From sequence record MT612989.1: a stretch of DNA of 64,000 nt; one strand, written 5' to 3'. Every line of letters starts with the position of its first letter. The first letter of the stretch is position 1. A model generated the notes under the pieces. It was not told where the DNA came from, made no database searches, and saw only the letters and a list, made by a program, of their open reading frames with translations. Below, piece after piece: positions 37,773-51,912 of the stretch. The translations under genes and the position numbers were made by a program.

Positions 37773-38039
37773 ATGTCACAACAAACTGCTGAACAAGTAA
37801 TCGAACAGAAAGACGCACAAATCAAAGATCTTAAAGTGCGTACCTTTGACCTACAAGAGACTCTTCAAGAAGAGCGCAATTCTTTTGGTCAGTTCGTGGG
37901 TGTACTAGCTCAACTACTCGATTTCGATCAGACGCAAGCAAGTTCTCTACAGAACTACGTTGACGAAATCGCAATTCTAACCGGTAAAGCTGAACGTCCT
38001 GCTGAAGGCGACGGCGAACAAGAAAAAGACGCTGAATAA
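37773..38039 (+). CDS. gp57A: Tail fibre assembly chaperone
   Basis: 88 aa coiled coil, LKVRTFDLQE; beside genes 1 and 57B. Confidence 0.75.
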   Translation: MSQQTAEQVIEQKDAQIKDLKVRTFDLQETLQEERNSFGQFVGVLAQLLDFDQTQASSLQNYVDEIAILTGKAERPAEGDGEQEKDAE

Positions 38040-38494
38040 TGAAACTATCTAAGTTCCTTGAAAGTCAGGGAACTTACGTTGGTATTAGATTAGACGAGGC
38101 GAGTAAGCAAGAGTTAGTTCGATTGCAGAAAACGCTTCGTCTAAAAAATCCGTTAGAACCAGATAAATTTCACGTGACTGTGCTTTATAGTCGTAAGCAA
38201 ATTGATGTACCTGTTGTCGATACCACTTTCGTTGCTACTGTTGAACATATCGACTGTTGGAAAACGCAAGACGGCAAATATGCAGTTGTTGCTAAGATGG
38301 TATGTCCAGAACTTGTAGAACGTCACGATGATCTTATCTCTATCGGTGGTACTCACGACTACCCTGACTATACCCCTCACGTTACGTTGTCTTATGACGA
38401 CGCGATCACACCTATGCCCGTCAACGCTGAAGTTCGGCTTGTTGATGAATATCTTGAACCACTTGATTTAAATTGGGTTGATAGTAATGACTGA
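38039..38494 (+). CDS. gp57B: 2H phosphoesterase, gp57B/Acb1 anti-CBASS nuclease family
   Basis: Two HxT motifs (FHVTVLYSR, PHVTLSY), GGTHDYPDYTPH, syntenic with 57A. Confidence 0.88.
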   Translation: MKLSKFLESQGTYVGIRLDEASKQELVRLQKTLRLKNPLEPDKFHVTVLYSRKQIDVPVVDTTFVATVEHIDCWKTQDGKYAVVAKMVCPELVERHDDLISIGGTHDYPDYTPHVTLSYDDAITPMPVNAEVRLVDEYLEPLDLNWVDSND

Positions 38495-38758: not shown

Positions 38759-38879
38759 TTGACTTATTCTGAAAAGCATGTAGAATGTATTTCATCGAGT
38801 CGAGAGACAGAACACAAACTTTCAACTCGATGAAATATTTGAAAAAAGTTGTTGACTTACACTGAAATGATGTTAAGAT
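38759..38879 (+). promoter_or_regulatory. Two tandem early promoters heading the tRNA/ncRNA cluster
   Basis: AAAAAGTTG-TTGACT..TAGAAT (38759-38786) and AAAAAAGTTG-TTGACT..TAAGAT (38852-38879), with A-tract UP elements. Confidence 0.8.
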
Positions 38880-38887
38880 TAACACAG

Positions 38888-38996
38888 TTGATTAAGCGAG
38901 CTAAGTTCATCGTTCTCGCCTCTTATTGAAGATGAACAATATTGATTAAGCAGACTAAACTCATCGTTTCTGCCTCTTCTCTGAAGATGAGTAATA
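38888..38996 (+). ncRNA. Two tandem H-type pseudoknot units
   Basis: 54/55-nt repeats; P1 GCGAG/CTCGC vs GCAGA/TCTGC, P2 GTTCATC/GATGAAC vs ACTCATC/GATGAGT. Confidence 0.7.
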
Positions 38997-39144
38997 TTTT
39001 AAATGTGCGTTAGCCGCAATGAATACATGGAGCCAGTATACGTTCTGGCGTGCAGGGATACTCTTAGCGGACGAATTCTCAATCAAAAACTAGCTGAGTT
39101 AAAATTCGCTCAGTCGGCGTGCAAGTAGCGCACATTTAAAATAT
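38994..39144 (+). ncRNA. Structured RNA closed by 16-bp stem
   Basis: ATATTTTAAATGTGCG/CGCACATTTAAAATAT; internal GCCAG/CTGGC hairpin; no ORF. Confidence 0.6.
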
Positions 39145-39159
39145 CGAGAGTACATTGGT

Positions 39160-39282
39160 CGAGTGTTGGTGTAGTGGCAGCACACGTAGCATACTGTAAT
39201 CAGACATGATTATATTCAGCAACCAATTTACGCATATCATAGGGAGATCGTGGGAACGGTTCGATTCCGTTACACTCGACCA
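39160..39282 (+). ncRNA. tRNA-like RNA A with enlarged anticodon arm carrying the CWGCA motif
   Basis: Acceptor CGAGTGT/ACACTCG-A-CCA, D arm, T arm AACGG-TTCGATT-CCGTT; motif G39208, CAGCAA 39217. Confidence 0.8.
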
Positions 39283-39315
39283 ATGTACTCTCACTAACAA
39301 AGCGAGGTGGACAAT

Positions 39316-39471: not shown

Positions 39472-39541
39472 CTAAGGCAAATATAACTAGAGGATTTTTG
39501 GTGCTTGTGGTTAATCACAAGCACTCTCAAGAACATATTGA

Positions 39542-39663
39542 GCAGGGTTGGTGTAGTGGCTAGCACACGTAGCATAAACGCAAGCTGTTAAGTTTGTATT
39601 CTGCAATCAATTTAGCATATCATTTCCAAGATCGTGACGCAGGTTCGAATCCTGCACCCTGCT
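39542..39663 (+). ncRNA. tRNA-like RNA B (paralogue of A)
   Basis: Acceptor GCAGGGT/ACCCTGC, T arm GCAGG-TTCGAAT-CCTGC, no encoded CCA; motif G39592, CTGCAA 39601. Confidence 0.8.
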
Positions 39664-39681
39664 CAATATGTTTTTACATTG

Positions 39682-39794
39682 GTGAAGTTAGTTCAGTTGG
39701 TTAGAATGCCGGCCAAAAAAACGAAGTCTGATAAGATTTCATTCTGCATTCACATGCACGCCGGAGGTCGCAGGTTCGAGTCCTGCACTTCACC
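39682..39794 (+). ncRNA. tRNA-like RNA C (tRNA-Asp-like body, anticodon replaced by motif insert)
   Basis: GTTCAGTTGGTTAGAATGCCGGCC...CACGCCGGAGGTCGCAGGTTCGAGTCC; motif G39735, CTGCAT 39744. Confidence 0.8.
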
Positions 39795-39804
39795 TTCAAA
39801 TTCT

Positions 39805-39929
39805 GGAGAGTTAGCTCAGTCTGGTAGAGCAAAAGAATGTTAAAGAATACTGACAAGCATTCATGCTGCAAACCTTAATAACTAGGTAAATCTTTTTGTC
39901 ACGTGGTTCAAATCCCGTACTCTCCACCA
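39805..39929 (+). ncRNA. tRNA-like RNA D with motif insert
   Basis: GGAGAGT/ACTCTCC-A-CCA, canonical D arm, AAAGA/TCTTT stem; motif G39857, CTGCAA 39866. Confidence 0.8.
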
Positions 39930-40411: not shown

Positions 40412-40440
40412 TTGACAGACGTTTCATCAACGTGTAGTAT
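40412..40440 (+). promoter_or_regulatory. Early promoter
   Basis: A tract, TTGACA-17-TAGTAT. Confidence 0.8.
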
Positions 40441-41485: not shown

Positions 41486-41601
41486 AGTCGGGTAGCTCAG
41501 TGGTAGAGCACGAAGAATGATACTGACAAGTATCGCTCCAGCACTCCTTCAATTGCCTGTTAAGCACGTGGTCGCTGGTTCGAATCCAGCCCCGACTACC
41601 A
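41486..41601 (+). ncRNA. tRNA-like RNA E: GTT anticodon arm interrupted by 41-nt motif insert
   Basis: AGTCGGG/CCCGACT-A-CCA; CG[insert]TGC-CTGTTAA-GCACG; motif G41530, CAGCAC 41539. Confidence 0.8.
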
Positions 41602-44553: not shown

Positions 44554-44629
44554 GGAGCCGAGGTGTAAGTGGTTGCATGTCTCCCTGTCACGGAGAAGGT
44601 AGCGGGTTCGAAACCCGTCGGTTCCGCCA
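44554..44629 (+). tRNA. tRNA-Asp(GTC)
   Basis: TCTCC-CTGTCAC-GGAGA, G-CCA. Confidence 0.92.
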
Positions 44630-44648: not shown

Positions 44649-44722
44649 TGGGGATTGGTGTAAAGGCAGCATAACGTACTTTGAATGCGTTGGTATCAGT
44701 TCGAATCTGTTATCCCCAGCCA
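44649..44722 (+). tRNA. tRNA-Gln(TTG)
   Basis: ACGTA-CTTTGAA-TGCGT, G-CCA. Confidence 0.9.
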
Positions 44723-44729
44723 AATACCG

Positions 44730-44845
44730 AAGAGTGTTTTCAGCAAACAATTTACTAATATTCTTATCGGAAAGAAATGTTTAGGGTTCGATTCCCTTTC
44801 AGTGTTGGTATCACTGGTCTGGACGACGCTAGTAATAACACTCAG
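44730..44845 (+). ncRNA. RNA G: motif stem at termini enclosing a T arm and closed acceptor-like hairpin (Y-RNA/YrlA-like)
   Basis: AA-GAGTGT-TTT-CAGCAA ... AGGG-TTCGATT-CCCT, TCAGTG/CACTGG ... ACACTC-AG. Confidence 0.65.
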
Positions 44846-45166: not shown

Positions 45167-45241
45167 GGGCCGTTAGCTTAATTGGGAAAGCGCCTCACTT
45201 GCAATGAGGAAGATAGGGTTCGACTCCCTGCGTGTCCACCA
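45167..45241 (+). tRNA. tRNA-Ala(TGC), irregular acceptor stem
   Basis: CCTCA-CTTGCAA-TGAGG, G3-U70 retained, CCA. Confidence 0.8.
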
Positions 45242-50437: not shown

Positions 50438-50482
50438 AAGACATTTTACAGCAATTAATTATGAGGAAATGAACAATGTCAG
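50438..50482 (+). promoter_or_regulatory. Leader hairpin with CWGCA motif enclosing RBS and AUG of Ro60-like gene
   Basis: AA-GACATT-TTA-CAGCAA..GAGG..AATGTC-AG; ATG 50476 lies in the 3' strand. Confidence 0.75.
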
Positions 50483-51912
50483 TATTTATGAACGCAATGC
50501 AAACAAACGATTCACGCACAGCAAACGGTGCAGTTACTCACAGCACTTCAGGTAACGAGTGTCTAAACTTGTTCTTCGGTATTGCTGCTATGCGTGGCAA
50601 CGATCAGTCTAAAACACTGTTCGGTCGTGCGTTTGCAGAAAACCCAGAACTAGCGACTCGCATTCTTTTGTGGTCTCGTGATGTTCGAGGTGGTGCGGGT
50701 GAACGTGGTACTTTCCGTACTCTATTCACTAAACTTTGTAATGAACAGCCTGACGTAGCTCGTGCTGTAATGTCGAAAATTCCAGAACTAGGTCGTTACG
50801 ATGACTTGATTTCTGCTTTCGGTACACGTCTTGAACAAGATGCGATCACAATGTGGTCGAACGCAATTGTCAATGACAAGAATGGTCTTGCTGCGAAGTG
50901 GTTCCCACGTGAAAACAGCAAAAACGGTCATGTGTTCAAGCGCACAATCAAGTCTCTTGGCGTAACTGCGAAGCAGTGGCGTAAGATTCTGTCGCTTCTG
51001 TCTGACACTGTTGAGCAGAAGATGTGTGCGCAAAAATGGGATGCAATCGACTTCGGTAAGTTGCCTTCTGTAGCGTCTGCTCGTTATCAACAAGCATTCG
51101 GTCGTAACGCTTCAACACGTTACACAAACTACATCGAGTCACTTCAAAAAGGTGAAGCGAAGATCAACGCTGGCGCATTGTTCCCATACGATGTCGTTAA
51201 GAGCGTTAGTCACGGTAATGCGTCTGTAGCGAACGAGCAATGGAAAGCTCTGCCAAACTACATGGAAGGTTCTGATGAACGCATCATCCCTGTTGTTGAC
51301 GTGTCTGGCTCTATGAGCACGCCAATTAACGCAGGTACAGACCGTTCAGGTGTGACTTGTAAGCAAGTTGCAATGTCTCTTGGGATTTATGTTGCTGAAC
51401 GCAATGAAGGCATCTTCAAAGATCAGTTCATTTCGTTCTCAAGCGACCCGCACTTCCACCAGTTGCGCGGCTCTTCATTGAAAGAGCGTCTTGATAACAT
51501 GAATCGTTCAGGCGAAGACATGAGTACGAACATCGGTAAGTGCTTTGATGTTCTGCTAGAGCGTGCGAAGCGTGCAAATCTTTCACAAGAAGATATGCCA
51601 ACCAAGTTGCTTATCATGAGTGACATGGAATTCGATCAAGCAAACACTGGTGGTGGTTGGTACGGTCGCGGTGAACCTGCGAACTTCGATGCAATCAAAG
51701 CCAAGTACGCACGTGCTGGTTATGAAATGCCACAACTGGTCTTCTGGAACATTCGTGGTCGTCTTGGCAACGTTCCGGTTAAAGCTGGTGAAGCGGGTAC
51801 TGCACTGGTATCTGGTTGTAGCCCATCTATCTTGACTTCACTGTTGGGTGGTGAGCTTGAGCCAATCAAGATCATGATGAAAACTGTAGGCGTCGAACGC
51901 TACAGCTTTTAA
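50476..51912 (+). CDS. Ro60-like TROVE plus vWA protein (DUF2828-type)
   Basis: TANGA, RDVRGGAGER, PELGRYDDL, LAAKWFPRE; MIDAS VVDVSGSM; SDMEFD; VFWNI. Confidence 0.85.
   Translation: MSVFMNAMQTNDSRTANGAVTHSTSGNECLNLFFGIAAMRGNDQSKTLFGRAFAENPELATRILLWSRDVRGGAGERGTFRTLFTKLCNEQPDVARAVMSKIPELGRYDDLISAFGTRLEQDAITMWSNAIVNDKNGLAAKWFPRENSKNGHVFKRTIKSLGVTAKQWRKILSLLSDTVEQKMCAQKWDAIDFGKLPSVASARYQQAFGRNASTRYTNYIESLQKGEAKINAGALFPYDVVKSVSHGNASVANEQWKALPNYMEGSDERIIPVVDVSGSMSTPINAGTDRSGVTCKQVAMSLGIYVAERNEGIFKDQFISFSSDPHFHQLRGSSLKERLDNMNRSGEDMSTNIGKCFDVLLERAKRANLSQEDMPTKLLIMSDMEFDQANTGGGWYGRGEPANFDAIKAKYARAGYEMPQLVFWNIRGRLGNVPVKAGEAGTALVSGCSPSILTSLLGGELEPIKIMMKTVGVERYSF

Follow-up and report, generated by a model that had tools for sequence, protein, structure and literature searches.

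A tRNA-Asp-derived RNA with a conserved cassette in its anticodon loop, a candidate Y-RNA-type partner of a Ro60-like protein in a Vibrio phage

Results

RNA C derives from tRNA-Asp and is interrupted in the anticodon loop

We analysed a stretch of 64,000 nucleotides (the window) from sequence record MT612989.1, which is identical to Vibrio phage vB_ValM_R11Z, a KVP40-like Schizotequatrovirus and thus a T4-like phage. The window holds five small tRNA-shaped RNA genes (RNAs A to E) that share an inserted cassette, a weaker sixth copy of this cassette and, 10.7 kb downstream of RNA C and on the same strand, the gene for a Ro60-like protein (Table 1). RNA C, the subject of this report, has a 7-bp acceptor stem, a D-arm, a 5-bp anticodon stem (CCGGC/GCCGG) and a canonical T-arm with its conserved T-loop, as expected for a tRNA cloverleaf; the anticodon loop of a functional tRNA (7 nt with U33, an anticodon and purine 37) is absent, and a loop of 46 nt stands in its place. 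Its 5' body runs from the acceptor 5' strand through the D-arm and the anticodon-stem 5' strand CCGGC to C32, and is followed by a 42-nt insert made up, in order, of an A-rich linker, a 7-bp hairpin, the single-stranded sequence UUCUGCAU and a short tail. The 3' body then resumes with C36-A37-C38, the anticodon-stem 3' strand GCCGG, the variable loop AGGUC, the T-arm, the acceptor 3' strand and a C as discriminator. The Rfam tRNA model RF00005 matches RNA C end to end (model positions 1-71) with 53.7 bits (E 9e-9; gathering score 29) and one 45-nt insertion located in the anticodon loop, and the family covariance model R1 (see below) gives it 59.6 bits, while ARAGORN in standard mode did not report it. 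Folded by itself, RNA C has a z-score of -2.4, and the insert hairpin is present in both the minimum free energy (MFE) and the centroid structure. The KVP40 record labels this gene 'tRNA-Pseudo-5', and the records of phages phi-Grn1 and phi-pp2 list it as an intron-containing 'tRNA-Phe', the anticodon of which is an artefact, as it falls within the A-run of the insert.

To trace the body, we scanned bacteria (one genome per species) for the D-arm of RNA C joined to a normal Asp anticodon arm, which yielded more than 120 tRNA-Asp(GUC) genes, including those of Vibrio, Photobacterium and Shewanella. With the acceptor stem left out, RNA C is identical to Vibrio tRNA-Asp(GUC) at 51 of 56 positions (91%), spanning the D-arm, the anticodon stem, C32, C36-A37-C38, the variable loop and the T-arm, and the insert occupies precisely the site of U33-G34-U35. 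The closest of 1825 distinct viral tRNAs is also a tRNA-Asp (0.88), but the isotype signal among viral tRNAs alone is not exclusive, because a tRNA-Arg(UCU) reaches 0.85. The ordinary tRNA-Asp(GUC) gene that the phage itself carries has a body unlike that of RNA C. These data confirm the tRNA-Asp ancestry of RNA C. A preliminary description of this locus had proposed a tRNA-Asp-type body with an insert (GAAGTC-TGATAA-GATTTC-ATT-CTGCAT) at the position of TGT; the plus strand agrees with this description letter for letter, and the comparisons with Vibrio and viral tRNAs bear out both the isotype and the site of insertion.

The derivation is accompanied by a loss of Asp identity. Aspartyl-tRNA synthetase (AspRS) recognizes, by E. 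coli rules, G73, G34-U35-C36, C38, G10 and G2:C71. Of these elements only G10, C36 and C38 are left in RNA C, whereas G73 is changed to C, G2:C71 to U2:A71, and G34-U35 are gone; in contrast to bacterial tRNA-Asp(GUC), RNA C also has a different acceptor stem and no encoded CCA. Since the acceptor stem and discriminator have been replaced and the anticodon is gone, RNA C can act neither as an acceptor nor as a decoder for Asp. The CAC relic is limited to this lineage, the RNA C orthologues of Vibrio phage D479 and Aeromonas phage APT65 having CCC instead.

The cassette defines a family of tRNA-shaped RNAs

A pattern scan of IMG/VR followed by searches with R1 revealed that the insert belongs to a widespread family. 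All copies in the window share one design, in which an A-rich linker is followed by a hairpin of 5-7 bp with a U-A or U-G closing pair and a GNNN tetraloop, a spacer of 0-4 nt, the motif Y-W-C-N-G-C-A-A and a tail leading to the T-arm. An alignment of 37 sequences (A1) shows no variation at the motif's C, G, C and A. Pairing in it reaches 83% for the hairpin, where 7 of 7 pairs have both-side changes, and 95-98% for the helices of the acceptor, D-arm and T-arm (acceptor 98%, D 95%). The same features recur in 93 further copies, which retain the invariant C-N-G-C-A and a hairpin that is 82.5% paired, again with both-side changes at all 7 pairs. Full-length R1 matches number at least 93 in 100 IMG/VR loci, and the bodies that carry the cassette resemble Asp, Asn, Glu, Pro, Gly, His, Ile and Phe tRNAs. 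The RNA cluster is found in 50 Schizotequatrovirus records, and the same design recurs in five cassette copies in the divergent phage D479 and in three in the unrelated 85-kb genome of APT65; motifs of the UUCUGCAU type occur in both of these phages, in IMG/VR contigs and in mycobacteriophage Lolly9. RNA C-type copies of D479 and APT65 show compensatory changes in the hairpin and in the anticodon stem (C:G to A:U). This pattern of sequence conservation indicates that the insert is a cassette under selection as RNA rather than junk. Rfam 15 detects family members only as tRNAs with a large insertion, and a literature search, incomplete in its coverage, found no description of this cassette RNA family.

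The position of the cassette differs among members in a way that sets RNA C apart. Once the insert is removed, 26 of the 37 aligned members regain a perfect anticodon stem of 5 bp and a loop of 7 nt. In 19 of these 26 the insert interrupts the stem on its 5' strand, following position 27, 28 or 29; U33 is present in 16 of the 19 (p 2e-7) and a purine at position 37 also in 16. RNA E, for example, becomes a textbook tRNA-Asn(GUU) arm (CGUGC-CUGUUAA-GCACG) without its insert, and its D479 counterpart (D479-E) retains the tRNA-Asn arm through a compensatory 29:41 change. RNA C represents a minority type whose stem is unbroken; here the insert splits the loop, and the anticodon is gone. No excision restores its anticodon loop; the 7 nt directly preceding the 3' strand are CAUGCAC (A33), and its orthologues, with UAAUCCC or UCUUCCC at this place, likewise have no U33. 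In RNA B of R11Z and KVP40 the anticodon arm is lost (3 of 5 pairs). The claim that the anticodon was replaced by the motif thus holds for RNA C but not for the family, as most relatives carry the cassette inside the 5' strand of the stem and keep the loop intact; insertion into the anticodon arm is the more general event, of which the replacement in RNA C is one result.

A Ro60-like protein gene is linked to the cassette RNAs

An all-against-all comparison of the open reading frames (ORFs) around the RNAs showed that 11 of 27 loci have in common a single large neighbour, of 370-570 aa. In the window it corresponds to a gene whose product is 44% identical to APT65_00123 and belongs to a family listed as PHROG 850 'RNA-binding protein' and, in mycobacteriophage records, as 'Ro-like RNA binding protein'; by tblastn the family occurs in 710 of 50,697 GenBank phage records, 56 of them of Vibrio phages. 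An AlphaFold2 model of the window protein, built from an alignment of window and IMG/VR sequences only, reached a predicted local distance difference test (pLDDT) of 85.9 and a predicted template modelling (pTM) score of 0.88. When this model was searched with Foldseek, the 13 best matches in the Protein Data Bank (PDB) were all Ro60/Rsr (E 1e-7 to 8e-5; TM 0.44-0.62, full length), and the only full-length fold matches were Xenopus and human Ro60, Deinococcus Rsr and the Ro60 of Thermus phage phiLo, with isolated vWA domains ranking far below. At the level of sequence the best profile match among solved Ro60 proteins is to 1YVP, confined to the region of the MIDAS, the metal ion-dependent adhesion site (E 0.015), and the MIDAS residues D275, S277 and S279 are invariant. 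As judged from the model, the protein has the Ro60 fold, a HEAT-repeat ring plus a vWA domain with MIDAS.

The association of this gene family with the cassette RNAs exceeds that expected from controls. Loci were fetched by the RNA motif alone and compared with loci fetched by a control pattern with the identical T-arm anchor and a permuted motif: a Ro-like gene was present in the flanks of 30 of 119 motif loci and 2 of 120 control loci (15-fold; Fisher p 1.8e-8), and both of these control loci hold R1 matches. In the converse direction, 17 of 80 loci fetched by the protein contain full-length R1 matches, all 24 of which lie on the strand of the gene, and a looser motif pattern uncovered several further copies that begin about 50 nt after the stop codon of the Ro-like gene. 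In APT65 the Ro-like gene APT65_00123 is flanked by three cassette RNAs within 1-2 kb and is located 35 kb from the tRNA cluster. No second conserved protein partner emerged, as the neighbouring ORFs, including an RNaseH-like ORF, are not common to Ro-like loci. This RNaseH_like ORF (PF04308; 51956-52486, plus strand) lies directly 3' of the Ro-like gene; homologues near a Ro-like gene were confined to two IMG/VR loci, L278 and L309, the two whose cassette RNAs are strongest.

Comparison with Y RNAs and T4 RNAs

The closest known counterparts of RNA C are the YrlA RNAs (RF02553), which Chen et al. 2014 (PMC4201824) found next to Ro60 orthologues in 254 bacteria and 22 phages using a 4-kb criterion, candidates overlapping tandem tRNA genes having been discarded. 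YrlA RNAs are ligands of Rsr and substrates of enzymes that modify tRNAs, and that of M. smegmatis is cut by RNase P and receives CCA (PMC4201824). Like YrlA, RNA C has a D-arm, a T-arm and an acceptor stem that are tRNA-like, together with a separate conserved module in the place of the anticodon arm, and like YrlA genes the cassette RNAs lie on the same strand as a gene for a Ro60-fold protein, often in multiple copies. A bridge between the two is provided by an RNA of mycobacteriophage Lolly9 (L136 5480-5760) directly downstream of a Ro-like gene, which scores 43.8 bits with R1 (E 1e-6) and 37.7 bits, below threshold, with the Rfam YrlA model. This RNA is permuted (T-arm, acceptor hairpin, D-arm) and carries ACAGCAA three times in all; the same CACAGCAA motif stands after a hairpin and at the same distance 5' of the T-arm as the motif in RNA C, whereas the published Ro motif GNCGAAN0-1G is not evident in it by eye. 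The differences from YrlA are several. YrlA is circularly permuted, ends in a Ro-binding stem and has a loop-closed acceptor stem, while RNA C has the native topology, its ends pairing as a normal acceptor stem; the Rfam YrlA model gives only 32 bits (gathering score 69) in a match that spans the T-arm of RNA C and the D-arm of RNA D; the candidate protein partner belongs to the DUF2828/DUF7788 branch rather than to an annotated TROVE family; and RNA C shows a clear and recent origin from one tRNA isotype. Y RNAs that mimic tRNAs and adjoin phage Ro60 genes are already known, and RNA C would be a variant of the YrlA type of tRNA mimic.

Solved Ro60-Y RNA particles of animals, Deinococcus and Thermus phage phiLo (1YVP, 2I91, 2NVO, 9KOP, 9L5Y) resemble the system described here in the ring-plus-vWA fold of the protein and in the RNA partner, which is small and structured and combines a helix with a conserved motif that is single-stranded or bulged, and differ from it in that the sequence similarity of the R11Z protein to them is marginal. 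Classical Y RNAs, unlike RNA C, are terminal-stem RNAs without a full tRNA cloverleaf. Proposed roles of such particles include RNA decay (through tethering of polynucleotide phosphorylase, PNPase) and, in phages, escape from host defence. Two Y-like RNAs and the host's PNPase are binding partners of the Ro60 of phage phiLo, and in a Listeria phage highly abundant RNAs lie just upstream of an Rsr-like gene. Bas63 gp130, a Ro60-like protein encoded directly upstream of the Felixounavirus tRNA block, counters the Ppl defence, and its authors suspected Y RNAs among the 'tRNAs' of the adjoining block.

A further point of comparison is offered by species 1 and 2 of T4 (rnaC and rnaD), small stable RNAs of unknown function from the tRNA region of a related phage, in which the neighbourhood is similar (genes 3, 1 and 57B, then the tRNA region). 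Homology to these RNAs was considered and rejected: no cassette is visible by eye, R1 gives only weak matches (about 24 bits) in the T4 tRNA block, and the annotated T4 region examined contains no Ro-like gene.

Paralogues and neighbours of RNA C

The other cassette RNAs of the window differ from RNA C chiefly in their ends and in the state of their anticodon arms (Table 1). CCA is encoded in RNAs A, D and E. The acceptor stems of RNAs A and B are lengthened by flanking sequence to about 21 bp and about 12 bp, respectively, unlike those of C, D and E, and these long stems may block processing by RNase P or mimic the terminal stem of a Y RNA. The degenerate sixth copy lacks a D-arm, lies directly 3' of a tRNA-Gln gene and is conserved in KVP40-type contigs; a comparable free-standing cassette copy occurs about 1 kb after the Ro-like gene in Felixounavirus-like contigs. 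The promoter predicted upstream of the RNA cluster shares an upstream TTGAAAAAAGTTG box with another promoter at 40412-40440.

Two neighbours of the cluster deserve mention. An element of 148 nt at 38998-39145 (plus strand) is predicted to form a 15-bp terminal stem (fold z = -3.0), and AGCCGCAA, which nearly repeats the family motif, stands just inside the 5' strand of this stem. The element recalls the classical Y RNAs with a terminal stem and may be another candidate partner of the Ro-like protein. Just upstream of the cluster, the gp57B homologue at 38039-38494 (plus strand) is Acb1, a 2H phosphoesterase directed against the cyclic-oligonucleotide-based anti-phage signalling system (CBASS; PF23474, E 8e-46), and the RNA cluster therefore adjoins a known counter-defence gene.

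Table 1. Positions of RNA C, its parts, the candidate protein partner and related features in the window
Feature	Position	Strand	Basis
RNA C, tRNA-Asp-derived tRNA-like RNA with cassette in anticodon loop	39682-39794	+	Rfam tRNA, R1
RNA C 5' body, GTGAAGT-TA-GTTC-AGTTGGTTA-GAAT-G-CCGGC-C	39682-39714	+	sequence, Rfam alignment
RNA C 42-nt insert, in place of U33-G34-U35	39715-39756	+	alignment to Vibrio tRNA-Asp genes
RNA C insert hairpin, GAAGUCU-GAUA-AGAUUUC, 7 bp	39723-39740	+	MFE and centroid folds
RNA C conserved single-stranded motif, UUCUGCAU (family consensus Y-W-C-N-G-C-A-A)	39742-39749	+	37-sequence alignment
RNA C 3' body, CAC-GCCGG-AGGTC-GCAGG-TTCGAGT-CCTGC-ACTTCAC-C	39757-39794	+	sequence, Rfam, tRNA-Asp alignment
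Ro60-like protein gene, 478 aa, DUF2828 + DUF7788/vWA; proposed partner	50476-51912	+	Pfam, AlphaFold2, Foldseek
RNA A, core 39160-39282, terminal helix extended to 21 bp	39146-39292	+	R1 53.6 bits; fold z -4.97
RNA B, core 39542-39664, terminal helix extended	39537-39668	+	R1 73.4 bits; fold z -3.69
RNA D, encoded CCA, AUGUUAA loop start before cassette	39805-39929	+	Rfam tRNA 50.1, R1 49.1 bits
RNA E, encoded CCA, cassette between positions 28/29 of tRNA-Asn(GUU) arm	41486-41601	+	Rfam tRNA 49.8, R1 65.2 bits
Sixth cassette copy, degenerate: hairpin, UUCAGCAA, T-arm	44722-44798	+	R1 34.8 bits, E 4e-5, full model length
Sigma-70-like promoter, TTGACT-16-TAAGAT, TG extended	38852-38879	+	consensus scan only
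Ordinary phage tRNA-Asp(GUC), contrast case	44554-44629	+	ARAGORN

Discussion

The data presented here are best accounted for if RNA C is neither a tRNA nor a pseudogene but a stable non-coding RNA (ncRNA) of the Y-RNA type, unpermuted and YrlA-like, with the Ro60-like protein as its putative partner, a reading to which we assign a probability of roughly 0.6. RNA C is read as a Y-RNA-like partner because the YrlA-like RNA of Lolly9, which sits next to a Ro-like gene, shares its motif. The preliminary description had foreseen a protein-binding tRNA mimic, and for that proposal there is now a candidate partner, a Ro60-fold protein from a linked gene family, which would be expected to bind the RNA. 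In the mechanism that we propose, a host-type tRNA-Asp gene acquired the 42-nt cassette in exchange for U33-G34-U35, and changes in the acceptor stem and discriminator abolished its Asp identity. Transcription of RNA C together with the other small RNAs would start at the early-type promoter upstream of the cluster, and the tRNA-shaped body could serve folding and stability, provide a handle for tRNA-binding proteins and enable processing of the ends by tRNA enzymes (RNase P cleavage, 3' trimming and CCA addition). The cassette would be the functional part, with the hairpin and UUCUGCAU presented as the proposed binding site for the Ro60-like ring. The five or six RNAs of this kind in each genome, built on different bodies, might form a set of Ro-like ribonucleoproteins (RNPs) early in infection that would, by analogy with Ro60/Y RNA particles and Bas63 gp130, act in RNA surveillance and decay or in counter-defence.

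Several observations weigh against this interpretation. Many members keep a canonical anticodon arm, which a Y-RNA function does not by itself explain. The published Ro motif (GNCGAAN0-1G/CGAA), expected near the 5' end, is by inspection absent from RNA C, which has the hairpin and Y-W-C-N-G-C-A-A instead. The link in the genomes is also imperfect, as a full-length R1 match lies within 10 kb in only 17 of the 80 Ro-like loci, EC6, CP8 and Listeria phage cka17 show no or only weak R1 matches, and in the phage studied here the Ro-like gene is 10.7 kb from RNA C, beyond the 4-kb criterion of Chen et al. Moreover, tRNA clusters are often close to cassette RNAs as well as to Ro-like genes. The control set removes this confounder only in part, because the motif loci carry twice the tRNAs of the controls (1036 versus 528). 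Finally, Bas63 gp130 is active against Ppl when moved alone into T7, and the protein therefore does not strictly need phage RNAs for its anti-Ppl activity.

The retained anticodon arms could instead mean that the cassette is a new short, protein-dependent tRNA intron or an excisable mobile insertion, the genes being conditional tRNAs and the Ro-like protein at most a precursor chaperone. For the family, but not for RNA C, this reading is the chief competitor, and we consider it rather improbable. A short insertion in the anticodon arm whose removal restores the arm is what tRNA introns (protein-spliced, or group I in bacteria) look like, and the regained stems and loops in 26 of 37 members, the frequencies of U33 and purine 37, the canonical tRNA-Asn loop CUGUUAA of RNA E with the 29:41 compensation in D479-E and the encoded CCA of RNAs A, D and E all speak for it. 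Protein-spliced introns of archaea and eukaryotes are reported to occur also at non-canonical positions (review, PMC4090602), and records based on tRNAscan call the present genes intron-containing tRNA-Phe, Asn, Cys or Val. Yet the anticodons that these records assign fall inside the insert, the loops of RNA C and its orthologues have no U33 and cannot be restored in RNA C by any excision, and RNA B has lost its arm in both R11Z and KVP40. Nor does inspection reveal a bulge-helix-bulge or other common junction structure, Rfam gives no match to a ribozyme family, no splicing endonuclease is found among the neighbouring ORFs, and a group I ribozyme would need far more than 42 nt. Ordinary tRNAs for Asn (two), Asp and Glu are already encoded by the phage, and the cassette is the most conserved part of these genes, which is unusual for a spacer-like intron. 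About as doubtful, if slightly less so, is the proposal that the RNAs are stand-alone tRNA decoys or sponges for host tRNA-targeting nucleases or modifying enzymes, with the linkage to Ro reflecting no more than a shared region. Such decoys would fit the mimicry of specific tRNAs by bodies and retained anticodon loops, the proximity of Acb1 and the reported ability of phage tRNAs to counter tRNA-cleaving defences (eLife 2023, PMC10264068); they leave unexplained why a single cassette is conserved on every body, why three copies surround the Ro-like gene of APT65 far from the tRNA cluster of that phage and why the enrichment is 15-fold, and RNA C offers an anticodon nuclease no anticodon loop.

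That RNA C is a decaying tRNA pseudogene with acquired junk sequence, as the KVP40 annotation implies, agrees with the missing anticodon, the missing CCA and the lost Asp identity elements, but is very improbable in view of cassette paralogues and orthologues kept across phage genera with covariation in all helices, an invariant C-N-G-C-A in 37 + 93 copies and a non-random link to one protein family. We give still less credence, to the point of near-dismissal, to the idea of small tmRNA-like molecules in which a message would resume at the conserved GCA codon. The U-A-C-A before this GCA recalls the sequence upstream of the tmRNA resume codon, and some members contain short in-frame ORFs such as ANLNN* and AISSY*; the reading was rejected because in-frame stops before the T-arm are not enriched over the other frames (15 of 37 members versus 9 and 15 of 37) and RNA C has none. 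Besides, RNA C has G3:C70 rather than the Ala pair G3:U70, and there is no match to tmRNA in Rfam.

Many phage genes annotated as 'tRNA pseudogene', 'tRNA-OTHER' or 'intron-containing tRNA-Phe/Asn/Cys/Val' appear to form one ncRNA family, and RNA C affords a near base-by-base view of a cellular tRNA becoming a putative Ro-type partner RNA. Unpermuted natural counterparts of YrlA would make the long-suspected tRNA origin of bacterial Y RNAs directly testable, and the candidate RNA partners, the binding-site hypothesis and the covariance model are defined reagents for experimenters interested in phage-host conflict. A bolder extension, which we regard as unlikely, is that the cassette is a transferable Ro-binding module that has repeatedly turned tRNA genes of many isotypes into Y RNAs. 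In that event the cassette RNAs would be the unpermuted intermediates from which YrlA-type Y RNAs evolved, and the members with an anticodon arm might be dual-function, either as anticodon-addressed Ro-like RNPs that engage tRNA-reading host factors (e.g. defence nucleases) or, alternatively, as conditional tRNAs released by excision of a new non-group-I tRNA intron of bacterial viruses.

Additional observations

A number of other possible explanations for the insert were tried and set aside. Small self-cleaving ribozymes (hammerhead-like CUGA, pistol, hatchet, twister) gave no Rfam match up to E 5, and the loop varies; for an archaeal-type bulge-helix-bulge intron, no consistent pairing was seen between the two junctions. 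Kissing-loop antisense pairing to tRNA anticodon loops (UGACA against UGUCA of tRNA-Asp) fits RNAs D and E only, and CU-rich tails resembling an anti-Shine-Dalgarno sequence are present in some members, not in RNA C. Joints in public sequencing runs of relatives, which are contig-level and DNA-like, were considered as traces of splicing and represent strain differences instead.

Inserts of other kinds also came to light in the searches. An Asp-like tRNA-shaped gene at 4480-4586 of L010 (IMG/VR contig 3300031669_000035) has an unrelated 32-nt insert (CCCUCUAAUGG...) in its anticodon arm and no R1 match, and is possibly the carrier of a different cassette. Contigs L008, L009 and L013, from giant-virus metagenome-assembled genomes (MAGs), contain tRNA-Ile(UAU) genes in which an intron of 42 nt occupies the canonical eukaryote-style position; these have the D-arm of RNA C, not the cassette, and are unrelated to the present finding.

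Near the RNA cluster, two direct repeats of about 55 nt, each starting GTTGATTAAGC(G/A), occupy 38880-38995 (plus strand) directly 3' of the promoter, with a predicted fold no better than that of shuffled sequences; phage D479 has one similar repeat unit before its RNA cluster (L005, about 2130-2190). KVP40 (L001 3072-3188) and one sequenced relative (run X2) have about 105-120 extra nt between RNAs B and C, in which, for KVP40, R1 sees no cassette copy. Further downstream, a tRNA-Ala(UGC)-like gene with the loop CUUGCAA, missed by ARAGORN, lies at 45167-45238 (plus strand) and scores 44.9 bits with Rfam.

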